A DNA stretch of 64,000 nt from Botryllus schlosseri. Its lineage: Eukaryota. Below the pieces are notes generated by a model. That model saw nothing but the letters and a program-made list of their open reading frames with translations, did no database searches and was not told where the DNA came from. Positions 9,453 through 39,778 of the stretch are shown piece after piece; within the stretch, counting starts at the first letter, position 1, and each line of letters begins with the position of its first letter. A program made the translations under genes and the position numbers. The stretch covers positions 15,686,001-15,750,000 of the forward strand of contig CM119379.1 in the NCBI GenBank assembly GCA_051294905.1. Direction: 5' to 3'.

Positions 9453-12400
9453 ATGCCAGGACAGAAGAAGATCCGCGTCAGTCGTGGTTCGGGACTAAAA
9501 AAGGATGAGATGCTACGAAGCAAGTATTTCTGCCAAGTCACCAGGAATCAGGTATATTTAGCGAATGCAAACCACAGAAATCATAATTCTCCATTCTCGG
9601 ATCTACTTTCGTTTTCTGTGTGCTTCAGATAACTTCCTTGGCATCTTCTCTGTCCTCTGCTTTCCTTTCTAAATCAAAATGTCGTTCACAGATGTTAGAT
9701 GTCGTCATGGAGATATCAGCTCCACCCAGACCGGATATTAAGCGTCCGCCTCTGCGGTACGTACTAGTGATTGACGTTAGTTCGAGCATGAAGTACAAAG
9801 TTGGTAAATCTACCGAGTCTTTATTGGATCGGGTCAAGGTACAGTGTATATAGATAACCATGTAATTAGATGTTATAGATAACTTTGCATTTCCAGGTGT
9901 TCGCGGAACTGGTGATTAGAAAAGTAGCAAATAAAGATTCGTTGGGTATAGTATCCTTTGCGAAAAATGTCAAAATCGAATTTCCAGTCACAATAATGAG
10001 CAATGACGCCAAAGTATGTTTGCCCTTCCCTTTGTGAATGATGTGAAAATGATAATGATTGGGAAAACATCTTTTATCGAAGGTACGGGCTTTGGGAGTA
10101 GTTCGGGAGCTCACAGTTCGCGGCGGCACAAATCTGGAACTTGGAATGATGACGGGACTAGAAGTGCTGAAAGAGTAGGCTTCTGTTCGTTTCAATTCTA
10201 ATTAGATTATTTGAATTTCGTCGCCTGATAAAGCAGTAGGCCTACTTCGTATGCCATCCACAGGAATGGTGGCTTCCAAGAACTGTAGACCTCCAAGAGT
10301 GTATTGCGAATGTTATTTTCCTATTTATCACTTTTTCTCCAAATTCTAGAATAGGTGACTAGCGGTATTGAACTTGAATATTCAAGTTGAAGTTGAATGT
10401 TTCAAGATTTCGTTTAATAACTCGAAAGAGTTTTCTTGTGCCCCTTATAAGTAGTTAACGGCACAAAGACAAGCATATCAACAGATATTCAAAGAAATCC
10501 ATTTGATAAATAACGATATAACAATATACTTTTAAAACAACGCTAGTCAAAGTTCACTGTACCGGTAACTATGCGGTGGTCATAGCCAGGAAAACGAATG
10601 AGATTAATGGAAATGATTTCAACGTTGTAAAACATATCGCGACAAAATTTCTTGTGTAGCTCGCAATCGGCAGAGAACAAGGACCTGATTGTAATATTCA
10701 CGGATGGAGAAGCCAACAAAGGGAGCACGGATGCCACGGAAATGATCGCGAACTATAATGAAGCTCAGGCAAAATCGGGGAACTCTGCCTGCGTTCCTAT
10801 CTCCGCATTCACGATTGGCGGATACGTACCGGCTCTGCTTGACGAGGTATTATAACAATAATAATTATCGGTGCTATTATTTTCGTCCGCTCAAGACGCA
10901 CACCTCGATGTGTAACACAAGACTCAATGCCTTGTGATGATCAAATAGTAAGCTGTTTGAATGACCAAATGCGGTCCGTCAATCTAAAAACCAGCAAGGC
11001 CTACTGCTCAGTAAAAATTTAGCCTGCATATGCTTTTTTGGAGTAATCAAGTGTGTTTTGCCGGCTTGCAGTACTTCCATGAATGGCTATTTTGTTAGAC
11101 TTCTCACATTTCTAATGGGACATGATTTACGCAAAATGACTTACATTTTACAATTTGGACTTTGAAAATTACAATGTAAGTTTCGAATAGTATATTCATA
11201 TTGAAAGGAACCTGAATATTTTCGGCTGACACTCGTCAGGGGTAATCGTCAGCAACTAGTAGAGAATTGGAAAGAACATTGTATATCAACAATCGTATCA
11301 ATCGTGGTGACGTCATATATTGTGATACGATTGTTGATATACAATGTTCTTTCCAATTCTCCGCTAGTTGCTGACGATTACCCCTGACGAGTGTCAACCG
11401 AAAATATCCGGGTTCATTACAATATGAATATAGTGTTCAATTGTATATTGAAGTTCTGTACCTCCAAGAAGCTCTTCAAATGTAAGTTTTGGGACAAAAT
11501 TCCATCCTTTTTGATTGAAATTGTAATAAGAACCATGTGAAATAGCATCAGAAACTGAATATCTTTTCGAAAATTCTGCCCATTTGTTGTGTCATTAGAC
11601 GTTATGCATTAAACTGGTACCATTTCAAGCGGTTTCTATGTGTTTTTGAAATTGATGGCATTATGTCTAAAATCGATCCGTTCATTTGCGCAAGTTTGAA
11701 TTCCGATGATGTTTTTTTTCCTTTCAGCTCTCTCAGCATTTGGGTAGCGACGCGTTCTACTGGCTTAACGAAAACGAAGAGTTCGAATCGGACATGCTGA
11801 TGCCGATTCTTCTGAGGTATCACCTTGCTTAAAAAATTCCATAGAGTTTCAAATTTGACTTTCGATCGTATTGGCAAGAGAGGAGACGCACGTCACCGAC
11901 GTTAAGATCAAAATGACATGCCTGGAAGGAGTGACTTTCGACGTGGACGCCACATACAAAACTGCGGCAATGGTCAGTTTTCGTGATCCTGAACGTGTTA
12001 TATTCATGATGTAGCTTTACACTTATTAGCATTGGCAATGGTAGTTAGTAGCAATGTGATGTGTTTTGAAGACTCGAGTGTCATCAACAAAGGTGATAGC
12101 GGTCTAGTTCAGGAAATTATTGACATTATTATTGATCAACCTTTCCAAAATGAAAAAACTTCAAGGTGTCATCAGATTTTTCGGACTCCAATTTATAAAT
12201 GTCTAATCGGGATGATAGATTGTGATTCTGGTCGTCAAGAATTCTTTTTTGCTGGTAATAGTAAAGGGGTAGCCTACGTCGGTGTTTTGGGATTCAGATA
12301 TAGGTTGTTTTCGTTGAACCTTTGGATCTGACGACAACCGCATTAATTTACAGAGTTAATAAGCTGGCATATTTACAAGTCATGAACTAGGCGATGGGGT

Positions 12401-15400
12401 GGATCATCTACTGTTTAAAAAACAAAATATTTTTTACACAATGTAATTTATTATCATCAAAAAGATGATACTTGATTTGCGCCTTGATTGAACGTGATGG
12501 GGATTCGGAGATGGGTGAAGGGCATTTGTAGAAGTGTTCTTGATTCGTGTTTGCAAAAATGTCTGGCAAGAAAAAGAGGAAATTTGCTTCATTAAACCAA
12601 ATGTCTATGTTGTTTTAAAATATAGAGCTGGATCTTGATCGAAAGATATTCCGCCACTGTTACGAATCCTTTTTAAACTGATCCGGGCAGAATGTGCTGA
12701 CTTGATAGAGCTCTTCCAATTCAGGGTTGTGACCAAGTCACACAAGGTTCCGATTCACAAGTCAATCTCACTTTTATAGTTTTCACTCGAGTCAAGTCCA
12801 GTCATTTTCGATTCACCATCGAGTCAAGTCACGGAGTAGAGTGTCGAGTCCGGGGCATAGTGTTTCGACTCGAGTCCGAGTCCGACTGTTCAGTTTCGAG
12901 TTGATGTGATGTGAAACCCACTTTTTACAACTCTGCTCGGTGATATCGAACGTTTCGTATTCATAATATACTAATCTTCCTCACTTTTTACAGTTTCTGG
13001 TAGTGATAGACGAAATGATAATACAATTGAATAGTATATTCATATTGAAATGAACCCGAATATTTTCGGCTGACACTCGTCACGGGTAATCGTCAGCAAC
13101 TAGTAGAGAATTGGAAAAAACATTGTATATCAACAATCGTATCACAAAATATGACGTCACCAGCATGAAATTTCGTGAATGAGAACTCCTTTTGTGGACA
13201 GAGTTTTGGTTGGTGCATTTTGATAAAACTCGACTCTAAGGCACACAAATGGAATTGTGAAGGGCGTCGCCCATGCTGGTGACGTAATATTTTGTGATAC
13301 GATTGTTGATATACAATGTTCTTTCCAATTCTCTACGAGTTGCTGACGATTACCCCTGACGAGTGTCAGCCGAAAATATTGGGGTTCATTTCAATATAAA
13401 TATACTATTCAAATGTATATTGAAGTTCTGTACCTCCAAGAAGCTTTTGAAATGATAATACTGTGATAACTTTGCCATTTTTCAAAATTACAATGAAATG
13501 CCTGTCTTGTTAGACCCTGCCTCGAGCCATGTGACTTGGTCATAGTCATGCGCAATGACTCAAGTACAAGTCGAATTGACTCGAGGCGAGTCTTGACTCG
13601 TGTCACTACAACCCTGTTCCAATTCAATGCCGCATATTCGCCAATCTAATCCTTCATTCAGGATCTTACGAAGGATGAGCTCAACTACTTCATACATTCA
13701 TTTCCGCAAGCCACAATGAAACAGATCCCTCTAAAGTTCAACTTGCCTCCAGAATCATCGGTAGTGTATGCTTCTTTTCGCATTGATCTAAATCGGCATT
13801 GTCTGTCGCCGGGCTTGTCTATTTCAGGCTGTTCGATATCCGATCTTGTTTGTATCGTGCTATCCGTAAATTTTGACTGCTTCTGATAGTATTTTAAAAA
13901 AAGGTTAGGTTATCTTGTAGTTAGGTTATCTTGTAGTTAACAAATTCACCTACTACACTACTGAATGATAAGCAAGTGTGTCCAAATCGGTCCTTGTTGC
14001 TACTCGAATAGAGTACATCGTAAAATTCTACTCAATTACAAGTAGATTTCAAATCTACTTTGAGTGGAAGTGGAAATTGAAAGGTCTGAAAGCTGCCCGA
14101 GTAGTTTGAGAAAGTAGATTTGGTGAAAAGGTCACATACTTTTAACGGTTTATCTGAGGTGGCTATTTTCAAAATTGCAAAAAAAAAAAACAGCTTTGCG
14201 ACTAAAGTAAAATGACTAACGACACTATCAATAGGTACGACCTCCCAAAATATATTCAGTTACAGCAGGAGTGGCCAACCCGTGGCCTGCGAGATAATTG
14301 TCAAAACTGATTGTATTATCAAAAAATGTATTGTCCGGGTAACTTATTGTGAACTTGCAAGGCCAACTGAAAATTTGATTATCGTGGCCACGAAATTTGG
14401 GATGTTGACGACTAAAATATTAGTTTTGGCCAGGGTTGTGACCAAGTCACGAGGTTCCGAGTCACAATTCAATCTCGCCTCTATAGTTTTGGCTCGAGTC
14501 ATGTCGAGTCATTTTCAATTCACCACCGAGTCAAGCCCGAATCCAAGTCGGCTGGTAGAGGGTCGAGTCCGAGTCACAGTGTTGTGACTCGAGTCCAAGT
14601 CATTACGTTCAGTTCTCAGTTCAATCAAGTTCCACCCAGTTTTTCAACTCTGCTCGAGTGATATAGAATGGCTCGCATTCGTAATATAGTAATTTTTCTC
14701 GGTGTTAACACACTCCAAATAGGCCTCGGGACTGATGACGAAATACCAATAATATGTTAACTTTGCTATTCTTCAAAGTTACAATGAAATGTCTGTCTTG
14801 GCCACCCTCGTCTCGAGTCATATGACTTGGTTTGAGTCAATCACAATGACAGTGCGCAAAAAATTCTACGCTCTTCACACGGTTTGTTGTCAGTTGATGA
14901 ATGATAGGCGCATGTTGACCGAAACCCTCGATATCGATATGTCCAGGTGCCAAATAGCCCCAAATAGTCCTTGCAAAGTAAGCCCAGCGGTATACAGAGG
15001 CTCTTCGCAATATATGCAAGTAACAATATTCATTTATTAACTTTGAAAACTTTTTGCCTTTCGCTCGACTAGGTCTTATATGCGCATTGGGTTTTCATGA
15101 CATAAATGTTATTGATTTTGAAGTGTAGTAAAATAATTCTTGTTTTCGCCGTCACCAAATCCTGTTCGCTCCTATCAGACGACTAAAAAAGTTCATTAGC
15201 ACTCAGGCGGTCCGCGACATGATTCGTAAGTTGCATGTGACTCTCTGGCCGAAAAGGTTGGCGGCCTCTGAGTTACAGTGAGGCAGGGGCTCTATTTGAT
15301 TCGAGTGAGAATCCTATTTTCTATGCGTCTTTCACAGGCTCTAGACCAGCGCCCAGTGCTGGATATTGAAATCACTTACATCGACGATAAAATGATGAAC

Positions 15401-18400
15401 CGTATTATGAAGGAATCAGTGCTGCTATCGTCGGCTGTTCTTAGCAACGTTTTGGGGGCCAGTCAAATAAACCAACCTCGTGGCCCATTCGGCATTCTGG
15501 ACAGTGTGTCAGCGTATTCAGTGAAGAATAACGCGATCGATACGTCTCTAAAGGCAGCGAACGCAGCTCTTGTTTCGGTCGCCGAAGCGAAGTGCAGAGT
15601 TGAGAGCATGGTGGCGATGGAAAAAATCGCGAAGTCTATCACGTGAGTCGTCCATGTCAGATAGGGAAGGAGTATTGACAGAATGAGAGATAGTCTAGCT
15701 CAGGGGTGGGCATGCGGCCCGCGAAAGCCTCAATAAACGTAGAAATATTGATAAAATGCATGAAAAATATCAAATTTCTGTGGGTACTTGATTCAACTTT
15801 TTCCTAATATATTTCAACATGATAATGATAAATGATATATTCTTACCATAGTATTTTTTTTAATTTTCGTGATGGCGCGATGGCCCGACCTCGCGGCCCA
15901 TGTATTTTGAAAGCTTTCCATTGCTAAACATCACAGAACGTGAATCGTAAATGACTTAATTCGGACCACAACAGTGATTTTAGATTGGAAACACGAGCAA
16001 ATTTAATACATATTTTGCTGTACTTGGATAAACCGATTTGCGAGTGTGTTAGATAGATTCTCTCTTTTTATGTGCAGAAGTATTTATATATATAATATTT
16101 ATATATTGTAGAAGCGTATTTAAAGGTAACGGGGCTATGATGCTGTCAGCATTTTGTGTCCTGAGGGTAAACCAAAAGTGCAAGCAGCAAATCTATGAAC
16201 AGATAGCTGCTCACAGACTCAAATTTACAATAGTTCTAAGAACCGGGACAGGGATATCTAGAGTTCTAGATATCTACTGAAAGCCTGCGACATCCTGCAT
16301 AGAATCTACTTTTTAAAATACTGGTACTCTTTACTTGGACACCTGTAACAGACCTTAAATTTTATACTTCTATGTGGAGCAGTTTTGCGTTTTGACAAGT
16401 CTTGGAAATCACTACTTCTACTTAAGTAGCAATGGTGACTAGTTTGACCGGGTCTACATAAACATCGGTCTCAAATCTCGAAGTATGGGCTCCTTTATTA
16501 GCATGCATTCACAATTTCTCACTCTTCACTTCGTTTAAACTACTTCCATTTCCGTGAGTGCGGGCCTCAAATATCAAAAGAATACACCAATATCGTGCAA
16601 ATGAATGAAAAATTGACATATTTTCAGGATTTCTTTCCAATTGAAGCTCCTCTTTGAACGGTTCACTCTGCTCCTCTACCTACATTTTCTCCCTGAAATA
16701 TTCAGCATTTCTTGTTTCCAAAAGCTTATTGCAGCTCTCAACTAAATTGGCTTGAAGGTACCGTAACCGATAGTGACTCCATCCCGACTCTGATATCACC
16801 AAGAATTCTATCAGCTCAGGTTCATCCTGGGGTCGTTGAAGAGGCTTTATCTGTTTAATTGTGGGAAGTGCAAGCGTAAAGTACCAGCAGCGTTAAATTC
16901 GAGAGCTAGCAGCGCCACAAAACTTGTCGGTTTTGCTTGACGATCGCAATATCCTTTGTCACCATTTCTGTATCTATAAATTTCAAAAGGCAGTTGACAT
17001 CAAATTTGTATGATAAAATTATATTGAGCAAAATCCACCCAAGTGCCATCTCACTCCTTCACTCAGCGGAAATCGATGCTAGCGCATTGAAACAGCAGGT
17101 ATACTGGTATAACGAGATTGCTGTACGACAAGAAGTCGAAAGGGTACATATGATGAATACTAATATAAACACAAAAGTCCGCTCCTAGCGCCACTGATTT
17201 TATTCGCTCAGCAGAACCTCACATCATGAAATAGCGTTTTACCTATATACGAAAGTACCGGTTCTCCGGTAGTTGGCGGGTGTTGCCTACAATTTGCAGG
17301 CTGCTCGACCGTGAAAATTGACACTTAAGTCTGGTGGTGCGATGACTTAACTTTGAGTGCCGATCCGAACGTATTTGAGTGTGAGTATACTTTTTGGCGT
17401 GAGTTGAGTAATGAAATCGTTGCTGAGCAGAGAATCGCTACTCGGCAGAGAAATTGGTCACGACCCTTAGTGTCCAAAGTTACCCTTAAGTGCAAAGTTA
17501 CCCCGGTTTACGGTAGTTAAATTACCTAATGTGTGCTCGTCACATTTTGTTAGGTAAAAACCATTCTTGGATTAGTTGAGTTGGATCCTTTTGTTGATGA
17601 AATCATCACCACATGATGTCGCTGTAGCGCCTGTATCAGTATAGAAACTATATTGGCTTGGATATCATTTTGTAATTCGGAAAGTAGCCAAAACCATCAC
17701 AGGATTGCCTCAAATTACATTTTGAACAAGCTGATTCTATTTTCTGTAGTTTCAGCATGATTCTTGAGGATTCTTGAATAACCGCCGTACAAATTGTATT
17801 CACTTTATTCATCACAGCAACGGGGAGGAGCCATCAGAAAGAGAAGAAGTCGTCCGCAAGGCTCTCTCAGAAATCGCACATGTACGCGACGAATACTCGT
17901 CGATTTATAAAAGAATGGGTAACCGGAAATCAACGGGTCAGCTCGCCAATTCGGCAAATGAATGGAAAGATAAAATTGAATTTGGTGCCACCCTGAACAA
18001 GTACGTATGTTTTAGTGAATTTGTAATATTTAGATGAGGGTAGGCTCGCAATTTCAGTCCAATTGTCCGTTTCAGGCTCAATTTCACACTGTCGTGTGCG
18101 ACATTTATGTACAATGCAGCGTAGAGTATATCCGAATACCTTGTGTTGAATGTAGGTCCAACACTGTGAACTGTGAACAATTGAACATGTTACTAAATAA
18201 TAACCAAGTATTTTTTATTATTTTAACTAAACTTTCAAGTTCTTCAACTGACCGCGAAATTGCCACTGATTTGCAGTTTTGTAGAATGCCCGGAACGTCA
18301 TCTGAAAATACCGGCCAAGACGTGACAAAATGAGTTTCTTTCAATGTGTCGACGCAGTTGATGATTTAAATTTCGTAAGAATATGAACTGAATAATGCAT

Positions 18401-23426: not shown

Positions 23427-24019
23427 AACGTTCAGTAATCGTAGACCAGACTTGCAGTTGTATGTTTTCGCAGTAAGATAAAAGGTCGATTATACTGAGT
23501 TACGAGTCGTTTGAAATTTCTGGGAGAGGGGTGGGTTGATCACACCATATGACTAATGTTAGGTTTGGTTTGTGTGTATGCTTTCCGAGTCATAGTCATG
23601 AATTGGGTAATTAAATTGAAGTAAGTTCTAACAAAATTGCTGGTGATATGATAGCTCGGCAGGTAACTAAGTAACCATATTGGAATGTCAGGTTTTCACT
23701 CACATAAAATTTTCCAGATTAATGATGTCCTACACTAGGCCTCAACTAAGTCAAACCTTGAACCCATTGACATACTGCACCGGTTAAGTAATTATCTTAA
23801 CTCTTTTCTCTACACAGAATATGAACCAGCACATTTATTAAATATAGCACTTGTATTTTATTAATGAAGCTTTAGATATGGGACACAATCCAGATATGCA
23901 TAACCAATGCATCACCAAATCAATGTTGAATTATGTAATCTGCTGTAAAGAGTTGCATTAAGATTCACATGCACATGATATGAAAATGTAAATTCCCACT
24001 GGAAAAGCACTTGACACAA

Positions 24020-24420
24020 TTTACCACTTCAGTTTTTCATAGACAATGTATGGATGGAGACGGTTGAAAAGAAATGGTTTGGAATCCGAGAAGGGCAATA
24101 TATATCTGACCACATAGCAATATTTAAGCATGATATATGAAGTCAATGAGCTAATGTCCGACCGTTTGTGATGTAAAGATCGAGTCATGTAGCTAGCTGA
24201 ATGAAGTAGATTGTTATAATTCTCAAGCGGAAGTGATGCCTTACAGCGCAAGCTTTGTGAGAGAGTTTTTTCATCCAACCGAAATACATAACAATCGGAC
24301 AGCAATAATGGTGGTACAGAAAATACGCATGCACAGTATTCGGTATCAGATAGGAATGATCAATACGACCTTGGTGGTCAACTAGTCTGATCGCACCTGC
24401 ATCAAGCAGGTACACTTGTC
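24020..24420 (-). pseudogene. Possible decayed LINE 3' fragment
   Basis: Fragmentary peptides (FNRLHPY, PNTVHAY) reminiscent of L2/CR1-group ORF2 C-termini; similar weak signal at about 26440-26700. Confidence 0.3.
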
Positions 24421-28500: not shown

Positions 28501-31500
28501 GCCATTTCAACTCAATCCCCTTTATGCATATCATTCCATAAAACTCACACATATTATATCCGTAGCGGGCAAGTCCGATATAGACTATGTGCAGGTAATG
28601 GTGAACTATAGACTTGTCTCTAAATATCGTCGCTGGAAAGCCAAACAGTCTTATGTCAATATAATTAGGACATAAATCAGTTTTGTTTTCAATTTCCCTT
28701 GAAACTTCAAGTTCAAATGTCCACTTCACTGGATATTCCTGCTATTTAGGAACTTGGAACCCGGTTAACGAAAGATCATCTCCAAATAGTTATAGAAGAT
28801 CAAAATTCTAAAATACGCGAAGTGGACATAGGACAATTTGGTTTTCTAGCGACGGTATTCATATCGGCTTAGTGTTAATGGTATGAAACTTCTTCTTCAA
28901 ATTCATGAATGAATTCCGTCAATAATATGGGTAGTGGCACCTAACACAATAAGGGCCTGACACAATGATTCGAGTACTCGGATCTGAATCTAGTATTAAT
29001 ACTAGTGATTCAAGTCGAGTAGTACATGATTTTTTCGACCACTGAAATTTTATACACTTCTTGCCGTTAAAAGTTACTACATAAATGAGAATGATAGTTT
29101 CTGTACTCTTTTTCTAGCCGCAAAGATACATCTTGCATTGTAAAAAGTAGCCACATTCGATAAACTGCTGAGAGTTTACGACCCCAAAACCATATCCACT
29201 TTTTGAAACTGCTTGTGAAACTTTCAAATCTTTCATTTACTACTTCTACTAGTAGCAATTTTGACATGTATTGGGAATTGCTACTTGTAATTGTGATTGA
29301 GTTTAAATTACGTCACTGCTTTGATCACCTCTGGAAATAATATCACCTATCATACATTATACTGTACGTTCCATACACGTCTCAAGTAACTCTTGCGCGT
29401 CCAGGAAGAAGCTTTAAAAGTCGTGAAAGGCCTACAAGCCGGTGGTGATACGAATCTCGAATTAGGACTCGTGGCAGGCTTGAATTTACTTCAAGGGTTA
29501 GTACCATCTGTACATCCGGTAATTGGAAATAGATCTTATTAGCGCCTGATTTCAGCGGGGAGAAAGAAGATCGAGACCTCATTATTCTGTTTACCGACGG
29601 GGAACCTAACAAGGGTCAGATGGATGCAACCGAGCTGGTGAAGCAGTATCGTCAGACACAGGCGTCATTGGGAAAAGAATCTTGTGTTCCTTTATCTGCT
29701 TTTACTCTCGGAGGTTACACGCCGACACTTTTGCATTCGGTGAGATGGATGATTTTTCAATTTTTGTGAATTTCAACATATATAGCGAACGACAGTTACA
29801 TATAGGGTACATATAGGTTACAAATTGAGTACGCAAGCTGTTTTATTCCGAATTGAGTATGAAGCTTTGAGCAATCAAGCATGACACCATAGCGATATAG
29901 ATGACGTGGAAAGTTTGAAATATCTGACCACACACTATATATACACTATATTGAAGTTTATTTTGTATATTCGGCGGGGGAGATAGTGTAGTGGTTACGA
30001 TAAGCGCCCACCAATCTGACGAACCGGGTTCGATTCCCGTCGGGGATTCATCTGGGCTCCTCCTCCCCCGCCGTTGCCGTTCTTACGGCGACAAAAAGCC
30101 CAGTAAAAGACCCGACGAAGAAAAGCACTCACAAGGAACGGAAAGAACTAGTAGAAAGGGTCCCGGCTTCAAAGAAGATCAACATCGAAAAAGAACTGTG
30201 ACATCGGGCAGTCTAGGCCGAGGTGGATGTTAGAGTAAAGGATCGCTACTGATGCGTGTCGTTCGATATCCTCCTATCTGTTCATGACATCGTATTATGT
30301 CTTATCGCATTGTGCATTGTGTGTGACTGTTCAGATGAAAAATATAACCCAACAATGTTATGTTATGTTATGTTATCTAGTACGGCCTGCCTTGTGCTAC
30401 ATGTTTTGAATACTAAGATGGTTGTAAGGCGTCCTTGGCGAGATGAGAGTATCGGAAACAATAATTCTCATTGAAATTGTAAACATATAATTCTCGCCGT
30501 GGCAAGGAGTCTATGATCACAGTATTAGAAACACATCCTCTCTCTTTGCTTGACTCAAATCGTTACGACTCATTTACGGAAAGCTTTCCGACTGGCTCTC
30601 AACCAGGGTCGTAACCAAATCACAAGGTTCCGAGTCACAAGTCAATATCACTTTTATAGTTCTGGCTCGAGTCAAGTCCGAGTCCAAGTCAGTGAGTAGA
30701 GGGTCGAGTCTGAGTCATAGTATTGTGACTTGAGTCCGAATCCAAGTCATTGTGTTCACCGTTCAGTTTTGAGTTCAAATCCTGTTCAACCCACTTTTTT
30801 CCACTCTACTTCAGTTATATAGAATGGCTCTCATTCACAATAACGTAATTTTCCTCAGTCCTAACAATTTCTTGCCCTATTTTCCAAGTAGCAGGAATGA
30901 TAGATGAAATATCAATAATGTGATGACTTGACTATTCTTCGAAGTTACAATGAAATGTCTGTATTGGCTGTCCTAGTCTCGAGTCATATGACTTGTTTCG
31001 AGTCATACACAATGACTCGAGTACAAGTCGAGTCCATACAAAAATTGATTCGAGTCGAGTCATGTTACGCATTTGAAAAATATTCAAGTCAAGTCATCAA
31101 AAAATCGGGATTCGAGTCGAGTCATGACTGGAGTCATAACAACCCTGCCCTCAACGGTGGTGAACGTTTTCACGTCAGTAGTGGGATGAATTAAATTCGA
31201 AATGTAGGAAATATTTTCTGGCGACGTAATATTGAAATGACTGAACAACTAGCAGTATGGTACACAGTGTATATTTGCATGAAGACTCGGAAATAAATTT
31301 AGAGCATAGAGGTGTGCCTTCTGGCGGCAGATGATTGACTTTCGCAGATTATAATTGTAGACTCTAGCACAGCACAGCAAGTTTAGCTGTGTGATAACAC
31401 TATTATGGTTGTGCGAAATCTCAGCATCTGCAATATCGCTGTATCATTTCGGTGGAGAATATTTCCTTATGATTATGCCGGTAGTCAATGTAGCCGCCGA

Positions 31501-34500
31501 TGCTGCTCAGGTATAAACTGAAGATGAAAGATTTGACAATCATTTAGCTTTTGAAAAAAAATAATAGTTTGAAAATATATTGAAGATTTTGTATTGTACA
31601 TCAACAGCGCTGTGAACTGCACTACCATTAAATACATGGAAAATCTCACACTAAGACTCTACCGTTTTAGCTATCATGTCAGCTGGGAAGTGATGCATTC
31701 TACTGGCTGAATGAACACCAAGAATTCGAGAGGGATATGCTCACGACGATATTTTTAAGGTAGAATTGCACACACTGTCTTGTGACGCGCGTATGTGTAT
31801 TATCCAGCCGGTTGATTCTAAAAAGGGAAAAAACTACAGTCTCCGACGTCGCCATCGAAATGAGCTGTTGCGACGCCGTGAACTTCAATCTCAAGTTAAC
31901 GTATAAGACGGATCGCATGGTGGGTACTAAGTTATTACTGCTGTGAATGTCGAATTCATTCTTGCTGTTTTAAAAGACAATTTTACGGTACTATATATTT
32001 CAATAGTCTCAACCACAATGTCAACACAAATGACACATGCCCATAAGATCCTGGATATGGTGAAGTAGTTGGTATTTTTTATGTCACAGTTCATCTGTAA
32101 CATGGTCAGCCATGTCTGCCTCTGGTGTTTCATGGGGTAGGGATAGGACGAATCACATATTATTATAGTACTGTCACAAAGCATATAGCCTGTTCACGAC
32201 AATACCGATATGCATTTTCGCCAATGATCGTGAATTAAAGTGTACAACTAAATGCATGATGAACAGTTGCTACATTGTTTAGTTAAAACGCAATTTCCTT
32301 GTTGCTTTTTTCAGGAATTGTCTCTGGATAGCATGAACACCAAGATACATTCTATCGTAGAAGGCACAAAGAAGCACATTCCTTTAAGTTTATGTCTCAC
32401 TAAAGACATGCAGGTGATAGTTTAGCATTGATATCTAAATGGAAATGTACGAAACTGTTTAGAGAACTCTCTCTCCGCGTGAACCGAGGAGTCGCGTAAA
32501 TTTCCGTTTCCATGACTTCACTGTCAAGTCTTGTAACATTAAACAACAACACAACTGATTTTGAACTGCGACTAGGGCTCAGATTGTGACTCGTCAAAAG
32601 TGTGACTGCTGTTCTGCTATCTCATAGTATTATGGTTTTGAGATAACTTGAACAGCTGGTGAAGTTGAAATGAAGACATGATTCAAGTCTGGTTGTTTTG
32701 TGGTATTAACAGAGGTGGTCAGTAACGAAGTACTTCTACTTTTTCGAAGTACTCAAGTAGTTTTCCTCTACTTCTGGTACTTACTCAAGTAGACCTGAAT
32801 TTTACTACTTCTACTTCTACTTCATAATATTTTGTGATCTACTTACTTACTTTTCGCTATTTTCAGTTTGTCAAGTAGAAGTAGTTTAATCCTCCAATCA
32901 GGAAGCAAGCCTGAGAAATTTCGGGGCTGCTTTCACGGAGTATCGACATTTAATTTTCATAAAAGTTGAGTTAAGCCTAGAATTTTCGTCGCGCTTTGCG
33001 CGCAGTCTTATCGGAGTATCCAGTGTGATTTCACCAAAGTATCGGTGAATATAATTTAGGTAGCGGGTTGCCGTGGTTCCGTTCACACCGCATTGTTGCC
33101 CTTCGCCATATCAAATATTTCATCACAGTATATATGGCTTATCATAACGTTTGAAACTGATGTTTCGCAATCTAGCATTTACTTGTCATACCGTGATCTA
33201 ACTGTCCATGGCGTGTCCTAATCTGGAAAAGTGGACCCTGACTTTTTTTTAGTTTTAGAGCTGTTTTAGCATACCAACCTTCGAAACTTTCTGGACTAAA
33301 GACATTAAATACATGTTCCGTTTTTAGATTTATATTTCACTTTCAATTCCCAGTACCATATATTTTGATTTCTAAATATCAGTTCTTTTGTCTGGATAAC
33401 GTACATCTTGAAGTATAAAAAGTGTAGTAATGCCTTCAATTTCCAGAAATAAAGCTACATAATATAGCATTTTTACGGTCCACCATATTTTTTATTTACG
33501 TTTACTAATCGAAGAAAGGGTTTACACCGCATCCAACACAACATCTCCGTATTGCTCTTCGACTAAACTACAGGCCTTATAATATGTGGGAGTGCGCAAT
33601 ACCATGATATTTTCTAAAACGTGCTGTTTGAGTAAACAGAGGATTAGTATCGCATTTCCATATCAATACTATCATTTTCATCCCATGATGTGGACGAATA
33701 CTTATGCTATTGAAAACTGGATACCTGTTGGTATGCATTAATATGAATCAAGCTCGTCACCTGTCGCATAGCTCAATTTGCACCTTTTTATAATCCATGT
33801 GAGCGAATTAGGATCGTTTTCACAACTACTTACTTACTTGAGTACTTTTAAAGTCGGTCAATTCTACTTCTACTTCAAGTAGTTTTAGGTTGCTCATGAA
33901 AGAAGTACTTCTACTTGTACTTGAGTAGATTTTTTCGTCGCTACTTCTACTTCTACTTGAGTAGCTTTCTTGACTACTTTGACCACCTCTGGGTATTAAT
34001 GGTGTTTTTCAACTACAACTGTCATTTACACGAGCTTATTTTTTTATGTTGAGTCCGTAGCTGCCGACTTGGAGCACTGCCTTCTAGGGTGGAGTCAACC
34101 TCAACCTATTGATGTTGCAGCCGTGGATTACACCACTGCGCTATTTTGCCACATTCCAGTCGAGTAATGAGAGACAATTGTTTCGAGTACTGAAATTCTA
34201 TTCTCGTTTTCACTAAGAATTATACTATCACCGAGCATTATCTTTTCGTTACTTTTTTCCTACCGTGGAAACATTGAAATCTCAATAGTTCGTTTTAGAG
34301 CTTACAAAACATGCAATGCAAACGCAACATTTTCACAAACCACAATGAAATAAGTGTAGTCAAAAATATCACATTATCTTTAATGTCGTATACAGCTGAC
34401 ATTGTTGTCTTCGTCGTCGCATCAAAGCAGGGCTGTAACCAAGTCACAAGGCTCGGAGTCCCAAGTCAATCCCACTTTTATAGTTGTGACTCGAGTTAAG

Positions 34501-37500
34501 TCGAATCAATTTTTATTTTACCACCGAGTCAGAGTCATGGTATTACGACTCGAGTCTTAGTCCAAGTCATTGCGTTGACTGCTCAGTTTCGAGTTAAAGT
34601 CTAGTTAAAACCACTTTTTATAACTCTGTTTGGTAATATTGAATGTTTCGCATTTAAAATATACTAATTTTCCTCACTTCCAACAGTTCAAGTCGCATTT
34701 TCAAGTACCAGTACTGATAGGCGAAATACAGACAGTGTAGCTACTTTATCATTCTTCGAAATTACAACGAAATGTTGGCCTTGGCCGTCTGTGACTTGAG
34801 TCAAGTCGAGTCATCAGAAAATTGTGACTCGAGTCGAGTCATTACAACCCTGCATCAATTTCTAAATCATTCGTGCTGTTACATCGTCATGGTCACGATA
34901 ATATTGACGTGAAATAGCCATCGTATCGTAGCCTTTCTGGAATGCTAACATGTTTCTGCAGGATATCATCGATAAACCGATCGTGAACGTAAAACTTTCC
35001 TACCTCGACAATATAATGAGGAAAAGAGAGCTAACAGACACAGTGACGCTCTCCTTGCCACCGCCGACGGAAGTGGACGGCCCGACAAAAAGACAAGGTC
35101 AGTGACTAGGGCCTAGCAAGCTACGCGATGACCACCCTCCATGCTCTATTCAGGTTCTTTCTTGCCCGATATCACGGCCTTTTGCGTGACGAACAACGTT
35201 GCCGATACCACAAAGACGGCGGCACAGACTTCGCTGGCGGCTGTCGCAGATTCTAAATGCAGAGTCGTGACCATGGCGGCCATTTCAAGGATAGTGAATT
35301 CGAACAAGTAAGCCGCTTTTTATGCTGATATTAGCACAGGTTATTGGAGATTTTACCTCCACATAAATTAACGAATTCTGTGTATCTGAAGAATATACAA
35401 AGCAATATCTTGCATCTAACCATAAAGTTAGGGTTTGTCATGGATAATACTTATCTGATTGTCACCGTGGATATTACCTTGTAAGATAATATGTTATGGC
35501 TAAGCTTTTCAAAGAAGCTTCTCACACTGCATTTCAGTAATGGAACTTTCGTTCACTAACGAAGTATGTAGCAATCATATTAATATTTCGTCCTTATGGG
35601 TAGATACTATACTATATACTGGCTGTGTTCAAAACATGTTGAAAATAACTTTCACCTAGCTTAGCCAATTATAACTCCAAATGTAAGACCAGCATACACA
35701 ATTTCATACATTGCTATGAAAATGTTGTGAATAAATTTCTTCGGGAAGTACCAACGGAGGTTCAAGCATTACCGATTTAGGATACTTGAGTTTGATGTGA
35801 CCAAAGTTTGAATTTTATGCCTGAATGCGGTATCTGGTTTGGTATTTTTAGGTTGGTTTATTGTCTCGCTTAGTTTTGCTATGTTAGCCCTGTTGGCCGT
35901 ACCACGTCAGTACTAAGACCAGTGTTGTAACCAAGCTACAAGTTCCCATGTCACAAGTCAATTCTACTTTATAGTTTTGACTCGAGTCAAGTCTAGTCAT
36001 TTTCTATTCACCAACGAGTCAAGTCCAAGTATGTGTTCAACGGTTCGAGTCCAAGTCATTGTGTTTGCTGTTCATTTTCGTGTTCAAATTTGTTCAACTT
36101 ACTTTTTGACTTACTGCTTGGGTGATATTGAATCCCTCGCAATCATAATATAGGCATTTTCCTCCCTTTGCTCAGTTTCTGGCCCTATTTTGCGAATGCC
36201 GGTACTGATAGACGAAATACCAATAGCAAGGTAGCTTACAACACTTCTAAGTTGCAACAGAATGCTTGTCTTGGCCGTCCGAAACTCAAGTCATATGACT
36301 TGATCGAGTCACACACAACGACTCGAATGCAAGTCGAGTCGATACACAAAATGCTACAGGTCGAGTCACCAAATATCGCGACTCGAGTCAAGTCATTGCT
36401 GCCCTGACCAAGACTAGTTCGGAAATTCAGATTCATTAAATATTTACATGCAGGGGCTCACAACACATAATTCCAACAAAGATCGCGCGTGAGACCATCT
36501 TAGAGATCAACCGAATTAACAACCAGTACAAGTCAGTGATACAGGAGAGCAGCAAGCAGTCGCAGCAGCTTAGAGAGGACATCGGAAATTGGATAGCGCG
36601 AGTTAACTTTAGCGGAACCTTCAAAAAGTGAGATTAGCGAGAGAGCATAGGCAAAGGCGGGCCACGTCATAGGTCGATTGTGTTCAGTAAGAGAAGGTTG
36701 GGAAGGCTGTTTGCAATGCAATCATCTCTGGAGAACGAGATGCCGGCCGCCAGAGGGGTTTTCGATCCACAGCAAAGGCAACCGTATCTACATCCTGAAT
36801 TGGAAGAACAGCTACATCGCATTGATACGGTGAATTGGCAAGCTTGTTGTTATTTGTGGTATTCATGGTGTTCTTCGACTACAGTGGTCATTTACATCAG
36901 GCCGATATTCAATATTCTGATTCCATATCTGCAAACTTGTAACACAGCCTACTTTTAGGCCTTTGTAAGACCAGAGGGGTTTAAATCTGTAGAAAAGGCA
37001 ACCGTATCTAAATCCTCAGAACAGCTACATCACATTCATATGGTGAATTGGCAAGCATGTAATAATCACAGTATGCAGTGTGGTGATCAGAAGGGTTGCT
37101 CAAAAATAACTTTTTTCTTCAAATTTTACTTGCTTAGTAATTCAATTGTCAGGTTGCCTAAAAAATGCTAAGCACCAAATTTGGATCAATTCTGACCCGT
37201 AGAAGCCGTGCAATCAGGGAAATTACTCAGAAATCCCTATTTCTAATTGTAATTGAATAGTGCAACGCACAACACATTCATATTCGCAATTTATTCACTC
37301 CAAGCTTTTCAACTGACACTCATCGTGAGCGGTCGTCAGTAAATACAGAGATTGCAATTTGAAATTTAAAGATGAAATAGACAGTGTGACGTTAGAACGG
37401 TATAATAAAAACAATGAGAGAATTCACAAAACGATAGCGTTAAGCGCAGATGCAATTAGCCCAATACAAATTGGCTATAATATATAGCCAGATTCGCAGC

Positions 37501-39778
37501 ACTAATGAAATACACGGAGAGAACAGAGACGGTTCTTTTGTCGACAGAGAATCAGTTGTTTGAGTTTTTAGAGTAGATTTGAGAACCTTGAAATTGAACA
37601 GAGCACGTCCGCGAGTAAGAATTGAAAATCTGTTATCGTTATAGGATTTTGCACACTCTGGATGCGTTAGAAGGTGCTGACCTATTGCAGAGTTACATGT
37701 CATGGTCTGGTCATAGTGTTGCAAGAGAGGGTTGTTTGTTTGCGATTGGCTACCTAAAATGGAATTTGCATCCAGTTTTTTAATATGCTTGTATTTGTAA
37801 TGGTTATGAGAAGCTATCTAGAATAGTACTTCTACTTTTAGGAGTACTCAAGTAGGTTTTGTTTATATGCCCTTCTTTCCAAAATGATTTTGATTTTAGA
37901 CTGCTTCTGTCTCACAGTCTTCAGTTTTTCTGGCAAAACTAGGCCTACAATATTTACTTTTTTACTTACTCAGAAATTGTTACTCTCACTTGAACTTGAG
38001 TCAAAATTGATGACATCACTTCTACTAATGGAAATTTATAGTAGTAGTTCTACCTCTACTCGATTACCAATACTTCACTACTTTATTCACCCCTCCAAGA
38101 ATTGTTCCTTGAAGGATTAACGAAGTCCTCAAAGTCCTAAATGAACTGGTTATCACAGCTGACCGACCTGCGGACAGTCATGACTCTATATGTCACCAAA
38201 ACACTGACTGTGTCCTGGTGAATCCAGTAGGCCTACCAGCGTCCGGATTGCTTGTTGAAAATTCTTCGGAAATGATCTTCTGTTTTCAATAATAGATTAT
38301 TAAGAAGACAACAAGGAGAAGGAGAGAAGAGATGTACGCCAAGACACACAAGTGAGTGATGACTTACAATGGATCTTCTTTTGTATTGTTGAAGTAAATC
38401 GGTATCAAAATTGCACCAATTCATATATCTGTAAGCTATTCAGTGCAAGTCTCAAATGTGGTTTAGTTGATGTGGGAACTACATAAAAACCGGTTATAGG
38501 ACAGAATCTACCAGCTACTTTCCTTCAGTACTTTTTAAGCCACTATATACATGATCCATCCTAGTCTTTCAGAATTCAGTTTCAACTTGACGTGATTGCT
38601 ACAAATGTACAGACAACGAAGTTTTTTCATGCTATTTCGAATTCCTTGTATTTCAAACGCTGAGCTCTTGTGACACTTTGTCTTCAGGCCATTTCAACCA
38701 CGAAATGTACTCCTATCGGAATCTCTTCGATACAAAAAAGTTGGCCGAAGGCAAGAGACCTTCTGGGAGCTGGTGATAAGATGCGGAGGCAGACCAGGCA
38801 AGATAAAATAAAGACTTTTATGTCTGTTAGGATCAGAATGGGGTAATCGTTATTTGACATCTTAATTGATTGTTTGAAAAAATTCCAAAATAAATAGCTC
38901 TAACTAAGAATATACTTTTACCAAAAGGTTTTCCGCCACTTGGGCGATAATAGGGAATACCATATTTGCATTAATTTTTCCTGAAACAGTGGTTCTTAAT
39001 CTTGGCGCAAGGCCATGAAAATTTCTGAAATGGGGCGCTGGAGGAAAGAAGCTCAAGAACCAGTGTTCTAAAAGAACCATGGCTTTCTTTTCTCGGTTGG
39101 AACATGAACATGCCAAATGATGGAGTTGCTTGCATGCCCAGTATTTTCTTTCGCGTACCCCTGTTTGAGAACCCCTGGCATACCGAAACTGCAGTTTGGA
39201 AATTGACTCGATGAAGATATGCCGTGTCAACTTGCTCTACTTCAATTGCAGTTCCGAATGTGAACACGTTGTATCACGACACAGTTTTAGTCTGCGCTGA
39301 AAGAGACTTGAAGAAGAACACGCTTTTGGTAAAAGACGCGAAAGCAGCCAAGGTATTACTGACTTGTAGTTAGGCTACGATTACAAAATCGTTAAGTATG
39401 TGTCTCAGTTCAAATAATTCCAGTCTCTAATAGAATGAAAAATATGTTTGCCCTTTTACTTAGTATAATCCGATGAATCAAATGTTGATAGATAGTACTA
39501 TCTGTAGAAGGAAAGCGTGTAGCAAACTGCAATTATTAAGCTTTGCAATATTGAATTGAACTATAAAACAGGCTTTACTTATAATTACATTATCATTGGC
39601 CGGTAATGGTCATTTCATTTATTGAACTGGCTTTACTACTAGATAAGTTATAAATTCGATGAGGATAATAACTAATTTTCTCATCCTTTTTCAGATTCCA
39701 ATACTAAGAGAGCAGTATATCCATGACTGCGTAACTCAAAGGCAGATGATTAGTAAACTGGGCGGGTATTTACTTTGA
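25502..39778 (+). CDS. VWA (MIDAS) / Vwaint-like / BRCT domain protein, paralog 2 (about 628 aa, 16 coding exons)
   Basis: Exons 25502-25609, 27852-27998, 28061-28177, 29405-29496, 29556-29739, 31671-31759, 31826-31919, 32315-32413, 34962-35097, 35154-35307, 36454-36627, 36688-36829, 38296-38351, 38688-38797 (GC donor), 39252-39352, 39695-39778. Intron phases match paralog 1 and many exon lengths are identical (147, 117, 92, 89, 94, 99, 142, 110, 101). Motifs: IVDVSGSM, GGDTNL, LFTDGE, IPILREQYIHDC. Confidence 0.88.
27027..27219. mobile_element. hAT MITE with TGCGCA repeats
   Basis: TIR CAATGTTCCCTCTAA; perfect TSD attgtcgg. Inverted sister copy at 59517-60304. Confidence 0.88.
29973..30376 (+). 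mobile_element. tRNA-derived SINE, family 2
   Basis: A-box TAGTGTAGTGG, B-box GGGTTCGATTCCC; 3' end in (ATGTT)n repeats. Confidence 0.65.
30604..31147 (+). mobile_element. hAT MITE, GACTCGAGTC-repeat family
   Basis: TIRs as at 12722; TSD ctctcaac/ccctcaac. Confidence 0.85.
32710..33991. mobile_element. Tol2-like non-autonomous hAT element
   Basis: TIR CAGAGGTGGTCA/TGACCACCTCTG; perfect TSD ggtattaa; AAGTAC/TACTTGAGTA subterminal repeats. Reverse-complement match at about 4990-5536; further end fragments near 14030, 19060, 21840, 37820, 45770, 48380 and 61000. Confidence 0.85.
34428..34852 (+). mobile_element. hAT MITE, GACTCGAGTC-repeat family
   Basis: TIRs present; TSD catcaaag/catcaatt. 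Confidence 0.8.
35920..36406 (+). mobile_element. hAT MITE, GACTCGAGTC-repeat family
   Basis: Degenerate TIRs; TSD actaagac/accaagac. Confidence 0.8.
37251..37760 (-). mobile_element. Penelope-like retroelement remnant (GIY-YIG endonuclease C-terminus plus terminal repeat)
   Basis: Minus-strand translation SAIGQHLLTHPECAKSYNDNRFSILTRGR…KVL matches my recall of the PLE endonuclease C-terminus. Segment 37251-37360 aligns by eye to the arms of the elements at 11184 and 13025. Confidence 0.75.

Follow-up and report, generated by a model that had tools for sequence, protein, structure and literature searches.

A VWA domain joined to a beta-sandwich and a helical module is found in the intracellular plant E3 ligases WAV3, WAVH1, WAVH2 and EDA40 (RING-VWA-Vwaint) and in intracellular wheat Lr9 (kinase-kinase-vWA-Vwaint), for whose vWA/Vwaint module, fused to tandem kinases, an immune role as integrated decoy has been put forward (PMC10260399). 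Archaeal ArnB, Sec23/24 and WAV3 have their domain arrangement in common, and phospho-threonines in the helical domain of ArnB are read by the FHA domain of ArnA (PMC12852372). Vint proteins of fungi and protists are built as (U-box)-VWA-Vwaint-Vint (Bürglin 2008, PMC2362128). In animals, the only well-known combination of BRCT and VWA is that of PARP4 (vault PARP), with the order BRCT-PARP-VIT-VWA.

The 64,000-nucleotide stretch of Botryllus schlosseri DNA analysed here (the window) contains two tandem genes, A and B, which encode a VWA domain, a helical middle region, a basic linker and one C-terminal BRCT. This order, proposed earlier in a sequence-only reading, was borne out by Pfam, an AF2 model and profiles. 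The outer coordinates and the intactness of both genes likewise held, since the spliced models, guided by Styela, Ciona and Clavelina homologues, were open throughout:

9453..23426, +, gene A coding span: 15 coding exons, 642 aa; ATG 9453, stop 23424-23426
9453..9551, +, A exon 1: start codon, conserved N-terminal strand (…KYFCQ…)
9692..9838, +, A exon 2: VWA start, MIDAS DxSxS; top junction score with four guides
9897..10013, +, A exon 3: VWA; sub-threshold Pfam VWA_2/VWA match on the exon; junctions
10083..10174, +, A exon 4: VWA, MIDAS Thr (GGTNLE)
10660..10846, +, A exon 5: VWA, MIDAS Asp (FTDGE); 55% identity to the B exon, E 7e-27; junctions
11728..11816, +, A exon 6: family-invariant LGSDAFYWLN…DML; VWA end, helix into beta-sandwich
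11879..11972, +, A exon 7: beta-sandwich
13662..13760, +, A exon 8: beta-sandwich
15338..15642, +, A exon 9: beta-sandwich end and bundle helix 1
17818..18000, +, A exon 10: bundle helices 2-3; tblastn to P0032 residues 423-468; junctions
18628..18769, +, A exon 11: conserved motif LGRLFAM.SS…MPAAKGVF…P(F/Y)L (Vwaint-like)
19350..19426, +, A exon 12: NLS-like basic linker rich in K/R; predicted from phase and composition
21553..21662, +, A exon 13: BRCT part 1; 68% identity to P0032; junctions
22591..22691, +, A exon 14: BRCT part 2
23340..23426, +, A exon 15: BRCT part 3, stop; Pfam BRCT_2 E 4.7e-4 on the exon alone
25502..39778, +, gene B coding span: 16 coding exons, 628 aa if every exon is used; ATG 25502, stop 39776-39778
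25502..25609, +, B exon 1
27852..27998, +, B exon 2: VWA, MIDAS DxSxS
28061..28177, +, B exon 3: VWA; Pfam VWA_2 E 0.0016 on the exon; junctions
29405..29496, +, B exon 4: VWA, MIDAS Thr
29556..29739, +, B exon 5: VWA, MIDAS Asp
31671..31759, +, B exon 6: LGSDAFYWLN segment
31826..31919, +, B exon 7: beta-sandwich
32315..32413, +, B exon 8: beta-sandwich
34962..35097, +, B exon 9a: A exon 9 divided in two in B only
35154..35307, +, B exon 9b: bundle helix 1
36454..36627, +, B exon 10: helices 2-3; open, conserved; missing from assembled transcripts
36688..36829, +, B exon 11: conserved Vwaint-like motif; missing from assembled transcripts
38296..38351, +, B exon 12: basic linker; both junctions in RNA contigs; translation
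38688..38797, +, B exon 13: BRCT part 1; donor site GC
39252..39352, +, B exon 14: BRCT part 2
39695..39778, +, B exon 15/16: BRCT part 3, stop

Exon 1 of gene A was placed by homology to B and the guide proteins, with a GT donor in phase 0. Exon 12 is the best K/R-rich AG…GT exon with a phase 0 start and a phase 2 end, and its counterpart in B is confirmed by RNA. An alternative acceptor of A exon 2 at 9629 is unlikely; the start at 9692 scores best against four guides. In blastp, stop-to-stop pieces of A and B paired up exon for exon (lowest E 7e-27), and the proteins are 46% identical. As had been noticed from the sequence, intron phases are shared: every intron position and phase of A is common to both genes, and B adds one intron of 56 nt (35098-35153) that is spliced out in an RNA contig. 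Nine exon pairs are equal in length (147, 117, 92, 89, 94, 99, 142, 110 and 101 nt), and all introns are GT-AG with the sole exception of a GC-AG intron in B (38798-39251).

The MIDAS is complete in both proteins, in agreement with the sequence-only reading, and no family member in the alignment departs from its residues (DxSxS, T in G(G/D)TNLE, D in FTDG). In full-length homologues, VWA/VWA_2 and BRCT_2/BRCT exceeded the Pfam cut-off, while no Hint/Vint domain or U-box was found. As predicted, A and B have no signal peptide and no TM segment (maximum 19-residue Kyte-Doolittle mean 1.48 in A and 1.22 in B; the A N-terminus is hydrophilic), which supports a predicted intracellular location. The PARP and VIT domains were indeed missing from A/B-type proteins in the domain analysis. 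PARP4 differs in its catalytic PARP and VIT domains and in its reversed order; its VWA, one of the VIT/ITIH type, matches the tunicate profile along the VWA but no further. The tunicate BRCT profile matched the solved BRCTs of Mdb1 (4e-10), Chs5 (3e-6) and PARP1 (1e-4), and more weakly TopBP1, Lig4, REV1 and PARP4 (E about 0.1). When the phosphoserine pocket was inspected by eye in the alignment, the Ser of S-G and the Thr/Ser of T-x-K were conserved, Glu stood invariantly in place of the Gly, and the position of the Lys was variable. Since the canonical pocket is only partly kept, phosphopeptide binding is uncertain.

In the AF2 model built for the Styela orthologue (pLDDT 76, pTM 0.72), strands lie at residues 21-43, the VWA at 55-246, the sandwich at 247-378, helices at 381-486 and a further helix at 506-525; the first ~520 residues are thus modelled as a VWA domain, beta-sandwich and helical bundle. 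Residues 537-615 have a BRCT-like beta-alpha pattern, which, together with the profile matches to solved BRCTs, agrees with the BRCT assignment of the tail; against it, pLDDT in this part is just 55-70. Foldseek searches of the PDB with this model matched ArnB (8s05; E 1e-18, TM by target 0.65), the Catenulispora vWA protein 4fx5 (3.5e-17) and the ArnB paralogue 5a8j (7e-14); ITIH1 and, at about 1e-10, Sec23/24 also matched. VIA-align of the middle region gave Z 8.3 for ArnB and 7.5 for 4fx5. ArnB, 4fx5 and the Sec23/Sec24 core were the best solved-structure matches and have the sandwich-vWA-helical layout in common with A/B, but the likeness is one of fold only (about 13% identity), and Sec23/24 have extra zinc-finger and gelsolin domains and no working MIDAS role. 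In AFDB Swiss-Prot, sll0103 and the top-matching WAV3 family (WAV3/WAVH1/EDA40/WAVH2) aligned over query residues 1-525, and the top five matches of the post-VWA middle region alone were sll0103 and four WAV3-family Vwaint halves. Unlike the WAV3 family and Lr9, A and B have a C-terminal BRCT instead of a RING or kinase, and identity to them is 9-14%.

The nearest sequence profile to the N-terminal module was that of the Vint proteins. In hhalign, the tunicate N-terminal and middle profile aligned with 53 VWA-Vwaint-Vint proteins over columns 24-467 (E 2.6e-28), whereas alignments with YfbK-type, VIT-VWA-type and protist VWA proteins ended with the VWA at about column 218; only the fungal/protist VWA-Vwaint-Vint proteins aligned past it. 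Both groups are without a signal peptide, and the GR…S..H/S…Q/E motif aligns in register; the tunicate proteins differ in having no Hint/Vint or U-box. The most conserved non-VWA family motif, GR..A(M/L).SS...EMP.A.GVF...QP, lies in the last bundle helix and the loop after it. The earlier description of this region as Vwaint-like is supported by structure, with the PF14624 cluster ranking first in a language-model search and the hhalign result in its favour. By sequence it is weak: the Pfam Vwaint model matched none of the A/B exons or homologues in any Pfam search, and the motif-region (Vwaint-core) profile match alone had P 0.003 and probability 11%.

Searched exhaustively as a profile, the motif exon returned 31 proteins, and all placeable full-length ones are tunicate. 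A flat claim that no gene has this order was not sustained, because public databases already contain predicted same-order orthologues and paralogues from Styela clava (LOC120346726/120346725/120346391/120346390/120341230), Ciona intestinalis (LOC100178306/LOC108951000) and Clavelina lepadiformis (LOC143463104). These closest relatives are 32-47% identical to A/B over the full length (47% between A and LOC120346726) and have the MIDAS, the LGSDAFYWLN segment, the GR..AM.SS..EMP motif and the BRCT. All are computer-predicted 'uncharacterized protein' entries without name, paper or function, and we found no publication on any family member. The motif-exon profile and homologue searches found no other animal protein with the VWA–helical–BRCT order; beyond tunicates, the proteins nearest in sequence to the N-terminal module come from protists and fungi.

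The best explanation, to which as a whole we give a probability of roughly 45%, is that A and B arose by tandem duplication within their own lineage, belong to a tunicate-only family and encode soluble intracellular adaptors. The family assignment and the architecture are established: an ArnB/WAV3/Sec23-24-core-like module (short N-terminal strand pair, VWA with complete MIDAS, beta-sandwich and four-helix bundle) is followed by a helix, a K/R-rich NLS-like linker on its own exon, and one BRCT. In the manner of other VWA domains, the MIDAS module would bind a partner protein via an acidic residue that coordinates the metal, and the BRCT and basic linker may bring or anchor the complex at a phospho-, PAR- or chromatin-marked nuclear site; alternatively, the BRCT may regulate the MIDAS module in cis. 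By analogy, the BRCT might act as ArnA does in reading the phosphorylated helical domain of ArnB, although ArnA and ArnB are two proteins and the reader is FHA, not BRCT. Alternative splicing near the helical and motif exons, seen in B and in the Styela orthologue annotation, may yield BRCT-less or shortened forms. The ligand, localisation and BRCT role that we infer are those of a MIDAS adaptor, probably nuclear, targeted or regulated through its BRCT.

In the tree, A and B formed a clade (support 100/99) sister to the Styela 346725/346726/346391/341230 group, and Styela, Ciona and Clavelina had separate pairs on long branches, so that duplication is independent per lineage; A and B have their own in the lineage of Botryllus schlosseri. 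One chromosome-scale contig carries at least four full family genes and two VWA loci. These observations, and the decoy proposed for the Lr9 module, would also fit an innate-defence sensor, decoy or effector platform instead of a DNA-damage/chromatin adaptor, with the VWA-Vwaint-like module meeting non-self or pathogen factors and duplication and fast divergence reflecting an arms race. We consider this role, which like one in DNA damage had been raised earlier as a possibility, somewhat unlikely. Between A and B, dS is saturated and dN is 0.46, so that selection on average is purifying, not diversifying, and the MIDAS, motif and BRCT residues are invariant across roughly 65% divergence. Besides, animal immune receptors are not known to carry BRCT domains as a rule.

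Four B junctions were present in RNA-derived contigs (35097/35154, 38351/38688, 38797/39252 and 39352/39695), the joint 38794→39249 with 3 ambiguous bases corresponding to the GC…AG intron. All B transcripts assembled in two independent studies joined 35307 directly to 38296, skipping exons 10-11; full-length B mRNA was not seen among them, and contig depth was zero across 36473-36669 in both studies. As a result of this skip the reading frame changes, a stop falls within the first BRCT exon and the BRCT is lost. The skipped mRNA might be the normal product, gene B no longer yielding a full VWA-…-BRCT protein; VWA, sandwich, one helix and a 47-residue frameshifted tail would then be a truncated regulator's make-up or that of an NMD target, B being a paralogue heading to decay, and B does have a GC donor and a longer branch than A. 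This is unlikely, given that the skipped exons are open, have good splice sites and keep all family-invariant motif residues, and that the BRCT exons are open and 57-60% identical to those of Styela. Moreover, assembled contigs show the dominant form and drop rare ones, coverage was low (depth 5-13), and Styela annotates isoform X2, which omits exactly the exon 10 homologue, and isoform X3 without BRCT alongside the full-length form. In gene A, just 17-20% of the words of 17818-18769 were present in RNA-like runs.

The protist/fungal affinity of the N-terminal module and the confinement of the order to tunicates could point to recent horizontal transfer or recent exon shuffling in Botryllus schlosseri, a horizontal or shuffled origin having been suggested earlier, or to a two-gene assembly or annotation artefact, but these are very improbable and largely refuted, because the intron-rich family is found in three ascidian lineages with the same order over the full length, 14-15 spliceosomal introns sit where they are conserved, RNA contigs physically link the B sandwich/helix exons to the linker and BRCT exons, and GC content is uniform (about 0.37-0.42) across the region. 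Under the preferred reading as tunicate adaptors, A and B represent an unstudied intracellular protein type, so far tunicate-only, in which a MIDAS module is joined to a BRCT.

Genes A and B encode soluble proteins in which an intact metal-binding site (MIDAS) lies within an ArnB/WAV3-like three-domain module, followed by a basic linker and one BRCT domain, and we put the probability of this architecture and of the family assignment of A and B at about 0.9. The source assembly comprises 495 Mb in 219 contigs, and the GC content of the window is even (0.37-0.42). When the forward strand from 9 to 24.5 kb and from 24.5 to 40.5 kb was cut into stop-free pieces and the two sets were compared, a collinear series of pairs was obtained (E down to 7e-27). 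Splice models were then built with tunicate proteins as guides, enumerating at each junction the GT/AG pairs that kept the frame open:

9453-23426, forward strand: gene A, 15 coding exons, 642 aa, uninterrupted spliced model
25502-39778, forward strand: gene B, 16 coding exons, predicted 628 aa with every exon in use, uninterrupted spliced model
19350-19426, forward strand: linker exon of A, small, separate and K/R-rich, picked by phase and composition
38296-38351, forward strand: linker exon of B, small, separate and K/R-rich, both junctions present in RNA contigs

The outer coordinates equal those proposed for an intact tandem pair (9453-39778) by the sequence-only reading, whose basic linker is recovered as a small exon of its own in both genes. 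The two proteins are 46% identical, nine exon pairs are identical in length, and the phase is equal at every common intron, as had been claimed. Gene B has an extra 56-nt intron (35098-35153) without a counterpart in A, and its intron 38798-39251 is of the GC-AG type; the GC donor (CAG/GCAAGA), which closes the first BRCT exon of B at 38797/38798 and is used according to RNA contigs, is a GT in A. An Rfam scan of the region gave no match. The remaining matches between the A and B regions were intronic repeats: common repeat-derived open pieces lie in introns of A (12701-12906 and 14216-14658) and of B (30529-30730, 34299-34557 and 35917-36150), and their translations are 49-79% identical, these being interspersed elements and not exons.

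Full-length homologues scored 35-72 bits against the VWA profiles PF00092/PF13519 (Pfam cut-offs 23.8/27), which places them in the VWA family, while the exons of the window taken singly gave sub-threshold VWA_2/VWA matches (E 0.0016-0.016), as expected of fragments. All five MIDAS positions, including the Thr and the Asp, are present in A (D-V-S-S-S, GGTNLE, FTDGE) and in B (D-V-S-G-S, GDTNLE, FTDGE) and are invariant across the tunicate family alignment, bearing out the complete MIDAS noted from the sequence. Neither protein contains a segment hydrophobic enough to span a membrane, and the N-terminus of A is strongly hydrophilic, consistent with the proposed lack of a signal peptide and transmembrane segment. 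An identity as an extracellular adhesion protein was rejected on the same ground.

At the C-terminus, BRCT_2 scored 35-40 bits in the proteins P0002, P0010, P0020 and P0040 (Pfam cut-off 27.3), the BRCT profile scored 34 bits in P0020, and the last exon of A alone matched BRCT_2 in Pfam with an E of 4.7e-4. A family profile of the C-terminal region matched solved BRCT domains of S. pombe Mdb1 (4e-10), Chs5 (3e-6) and PARP1 (1e-4), and more weakly those of Crb2/Rhp9, TopBP1, Dpb11, ligase IV, REV1 and PARP4. These matches support the single C-terminal BRCT-like domain that had been suspected. Inspection of the family alignment by eye showed an invariant Ser after beta1, next to which an invariant Glu stands instead of Gly, and in the T-x-K of alpha2 the S/T is kept and the Lys position varies. 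Because of the Gly-to-Glu change and the unconserved Lys, the classical phosphoserine pocket is predicted to be incomplete.

The structure of the family was examined with an AlphaFold2 model of the Styela clava orthologue P0032 (LOC120346726), based on an 8-sequence alignment (pLDDT 76, pTM 0.72), in which the following segments were distinguished (P0032 residues):

21-43: N-terminal strand pair
55-246: VWA
247-378: beta-sandwich
381-486: bundle of four long helices
about 487-505: loop bearing the EMP...GVF...QP motif, well ordered
506-525: helix
537-615: beta/alpha pattern resembling BRCT, modelled with lower confidence

The order of secondary structure at 537-615 fits BRCT at a pLDDT of only 55-70. 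In Foldseek against solved structures, the archaeal VWA protein ArnB (8s05) was the best match (E 1e-18, TM 0.65 by target, 478 columns), followed by the Catenulispora vWA protein 4fx5, the ArnB paralogue 5a8j, ITIH1 and, further down, many Sec23/Sec24 chains. Among AFDB Swiss-Prot models, the best were cyanobacterial sll0103 (TM 0.71 by hit) and the Arabidopsis ligases WAV3, WAVH1, EDA40 and WAVH2, which have the order RING-VWA-Vwaint, with the alignments to sll0103 and the WAV3 group spanning residues 1-525. When the post-VWA region was modelled on its own (pLDDT 80), the five top Swiss-Prot matches were sll0103 and, from the four WAV3-family proteins, the C-terminal halves that bear Vwaint, then Sec24; in the PDB, ArnB was again at the top, with VIA-align Z scores of 8.3 for ArnB and 7.5 for 4fx5. 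A wide VIA-align search of the middle model was swamped by generic helical bundles, and the ArnB and 4fx5 rows were the only ones to span both sandwich and helices. In the ESM atlas, the post-VWA model matched VWA clusters and a Sec23_BS/Sec23_helical cluster (TM 0.5-0.67). The predicted structure therefore has the layout of ArnB and the Sec23/24 core, with a beta-sandwich, a vWA domain and a C-terminal helical bundle in one chain. ArnB, YfbK, 4fx5, the Sec23/24 core and the WAV3 ligases share one common layout (PMC12852372, 2026 ArnAB paper), and phosphothreonines in the helical domain of ArnB are read by the FHA domain of ArnA (PMC12852372). The phosphopeptide reader of ArnB is a separate protein. 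A Ku70/80-like identity was rejected, Ku being absent among the fold matches.

The middle region had also been credited with a Vwaint-like motif, which lies in exon 18628-18769 of A and 36688-36829 of B. The Vwaint profile PF14624 matched neither the window exons nor the full-length homologues in Pfam, and at E <= 10 it was absent from the window exons and from seven homologues over their motif regions; chance matches obtained there (DUF6735, RapH_N, SOAR etc.) were set aside. Searched against the whole genome of Botryllus, PF14624 gave nothing at the A/B locus and three sub-threshold matches elsewhere, and the positive controls P0045 and P0049, both Vint proteins, scored 74 and 64 bits. A language-model search with residues 215-520 of P0032 ranked a PF14624-bearing cluster first (0.93), and chytrid/protist VWA-Vwaint-Vint proteins were among the best non-tunicate matches of a profile of the tunicate N-terminal and middle regions. 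A first hhalign comparison with two Vint proteins only found nothing; repeated with 53 Vint proteins, it aligned columns 24-467 of 518 (E 2.6e-28), far past the VWA domain, whereas alignments with YfbK-type proteins, VIT-VWA-type proteins and two VWA proteins of protists ended where the VWA does, at about column 218. The post-VWA part alone matched the Vint family with P 2.9e-4 (probability 40%) and the helical part alone with P 0.0027 (probability 11%); in the latter, GR...SS...EMP...GVF...QPY was in register with the Vwaint core WGRHY...AH..Q...NFKDPG.Q.YG. A low-mact extension of the long alignment placed the motif out of register and was not used. The tunicate helical region did not match the protist proteins P0042 and P0043 significantly (hhalign P 0.23). 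These proteins of about 510 aa are the best non-tunicate matches of the N-terminal profile, and hhalign matches their end (...EGRRGTKMAMQTHMVQRSAMASG...) to Vwaint of the Vint type (P 2.8e-5), with no Pfam Vwaint call there. Divergent members thus seem to escape the Pfam Vwaint model. In our reading the tunicate module is homologous to the VWA-Vwaint module, and the motif resemblance is probably real; since the divergent form fails Vwaint's own profile, it is not filed as a Pfam Vwaint member.

A profile of three motif exons, searched exhaustively against 1.84 billion representative proteins, found 31 proteins in all. Full-length matches came from Styela clava, Ciona intestinalis and Clavelina lepadiformis, and further ones were Logan transcripts and a fragment from a marine metatranscriptome; every database entry of the family is labelled 'uncharacterized'. 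Above the Pfam thresholds, the tunicate homologues contain VWA and BRCT_2/BRCT alone. Unlike PARP4, which has a catalytic PARP domain, VIT and an N-terminal BRCT, they have no Pfam match to PARP or VIT and carry BRCT at the C-terminus, so the contrast drawn with PARP4 from the sequence stands. They also differ from the Vint proteins, which end in a Hint-like Vint domain: Vint/Hint (PF14623) was found by Pfam in no tunicate member (controls, 136-149 bits). A and B align collinearly over their full length with the tunicate VWA-BRCT family (Styela LOC120346726-like), at 45-47% identity over about 625 columns, and belong to it. The view that no gene with this domain order was known does not hold in that form: A and B are not orphans, as predicted orthologues are public, so that orthology to a family of this architecture applies in a weak sense, although no member has been described or characterised. 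Literature searches on the LOC-numbered tunicate homologues and on BRCT plus VWA in Ciona found nothing relevant, and no publication turned up in which a VWA module of the ArnB/WAV3 type is linked to a BRCT at the C-terminus.

Maximum-likelihood analysis placed A and B as mutual closest relatives (100/99) and sister to a Styela-specific group (85/93 for this grouping; 100/99 for the whole stolidobranch group), and Ciona and Clavelina each had their own pairs. These lineage-specific pairs indicate that duplication recurred separately in each lineage; the branches are long. Further loci were found on the contig of the window (G000:C9):

G000:C9:15668700-15686000, reaching window 1-623, reverse strand: gene C, third paralogue, head-to-head upstream of A (loci L003, L009-L012)
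G000:C9:6391698-6400272, forward strand: gene D, fourth full-length member, orthologue of Styela LOC120346390, same contig
G000:C9:25029039-25029498, reverse strand: VWA locus with VWA and LGSDAFYW-type exons
G000:C9:25050382-25052245, reverse strand: VWA locus with VWA and LGSDAFYW-type exons

Gene C has exons for the MIDAS, for the motif (...IGRIYAIQSTLETGMPTARGVF...) and for the BRCT, the last with a PYDPQPRWYV-type insertion, as in Styela LOC120346390. Motif or BRCT exons were not detected at the VWA loci at 25.03 and 25.05 Mb. The recurrent tandem duplication, together with the precedent of plant Lr9, suggests a possible immune role of the family, which is the main alternative to the adaptor mechanism discussed below. 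An origin by recent shuffling or horizontal transfer, which the sequence-only reading had entertained, is less likely for a family with this distribution among ascidians. The protein P0041 (L016, a transcriptome contig of Logan SRR32906199; 787 aa) has the same VWA-sandwich-helical module with a degenerate motif; where the others carry BRCT, it continues into a long coiled coil and ends in a hydrophobic tail with several spans. On this evidence the C-terminal module of the tunicate VWA-BRCT family appears exchangeable.

Transcription of B was examined by comparing two RNA-like contig sets from two studies (X1, X2) and two raw RNA runs of 2026 (X16, X20) with window 34700-40600. The contigs confirm splicing at the intron peculiar to B (35097/35154), on either side of the linker exon (the joint into 38296, and 38351/38688), at the GC-AG intron (38797/39252, given as 38794 to 39249 with three ambiguous bases) and at the last intron (39352/39695), and they physically join the sandwich/helix exons to the linker and BRCT exons. 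Unexpectedly, 35307 was joined straight to 38296 in both X1 and X2; the record coordinates leave no space for extra letters between the two sides, and contig depth over 36473-36669 was zero in both sets. Exons 36454-36627 and 36688-36829 (316 nt) are thus skipped in the contigs, which report the dominant form only, the raw reads of X16/X20 being too sparse over B for isoform calls. Skipping shifts the frame, and the protein ends 47 residues on, within the first BRCT exon. In gene A, 17-20% of the words from 17818-18769 occur in some RNA-like runs, which is compatible with expression of one or both exons there. Among the annotated isoforms of Styela LOC120346726 (P0032, P0033/P0034 and P0036), X2 is without residues 413-470 (58 aa, in frame), the homologue of A 17818-18000 and B 36454-36627, and X3 stops past the linker without BRCT. 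Taken with the skip in B, these isoforms suggest that splicing variation at the helical/motif exons is a trait of the family. That B is instead a decaying, exon-skipped paralogue is less likely: its skipped exons are open, have consensus splice sites and retain all invariant motif residues. Allelic differences in the B exons number only three (two synonymous and one T to S). A dN of 0.46 between A and B, with dS saturated and the ratio unusable, implies purifying selection on the genes on average. Within B introns, 34700-34896 and 35882-36078 are very abundant repeat segments with word depth in the thousands in X1/X2. A backward joint from 35999 to 34791 occurs in the contigs as well as in 11+11 read starts of the raw RNA data, the pattern expected of a circular or tandem repeat RNA.

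That the MIDAS binds an acidic residue on a partner is established for VWA/I-domains generally. We tentatively propose an adaptor mechanism, at somewhat less than even odds, in which the MIDAS would bind such a residue, the linker would drive nuclear import, and the BRCT would target phosphorylated, PARylated or DNA-end sites; alternatively, by analogy with ArnA/ArnB, the BRCT might regulate the module in cis. Alternative splicing may tune the protein by removing the helical/motif exons or the BRCT. It is also conceivable, if unlikely, that these genes are the sole animal survivors of an ancient eukaryotic VWA-Vwaint(-Vint) lineage, in which the self-cleaving Hint domain gave way to a BRCT in the tunicate ancestor, yielding a single-chain counterpart of ArnB/ArnA; the BRCT would read phosphorylation of its own helical/motif region or of a partner, switching nuclear MIDAS binding, and regulated skipping would yield BRCT-less antagonists.

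Known carriers of the VWA-beta-sandwich-helical module are Sec23/24 of COPII, ArnB in the control of archaeal motility, the plant WAV3 E3 ligases and Lr9 in wheat rust resistance, and its Vwaint-bearing form was considered to have mostly disappeared from animals (PMC2362128). In practical terms the gain is modest, namely a structural and evolutionary annotation for 'uncharacterized protein' entries and a flag on the unusual splicing of B. The tunicate genes show the module in chordates, fused to BRCT, in an unstudied family duplicated independently in several ascidian lineages. If the BRCT does bring a MIDAS adaptor to chromatin that is damaged or marked, or phospho-gates that adaptor, the family would represent a new kind of BRCT effector and, if the exchange of Hint for BRCT is also true, a tractable case of domain replacement.
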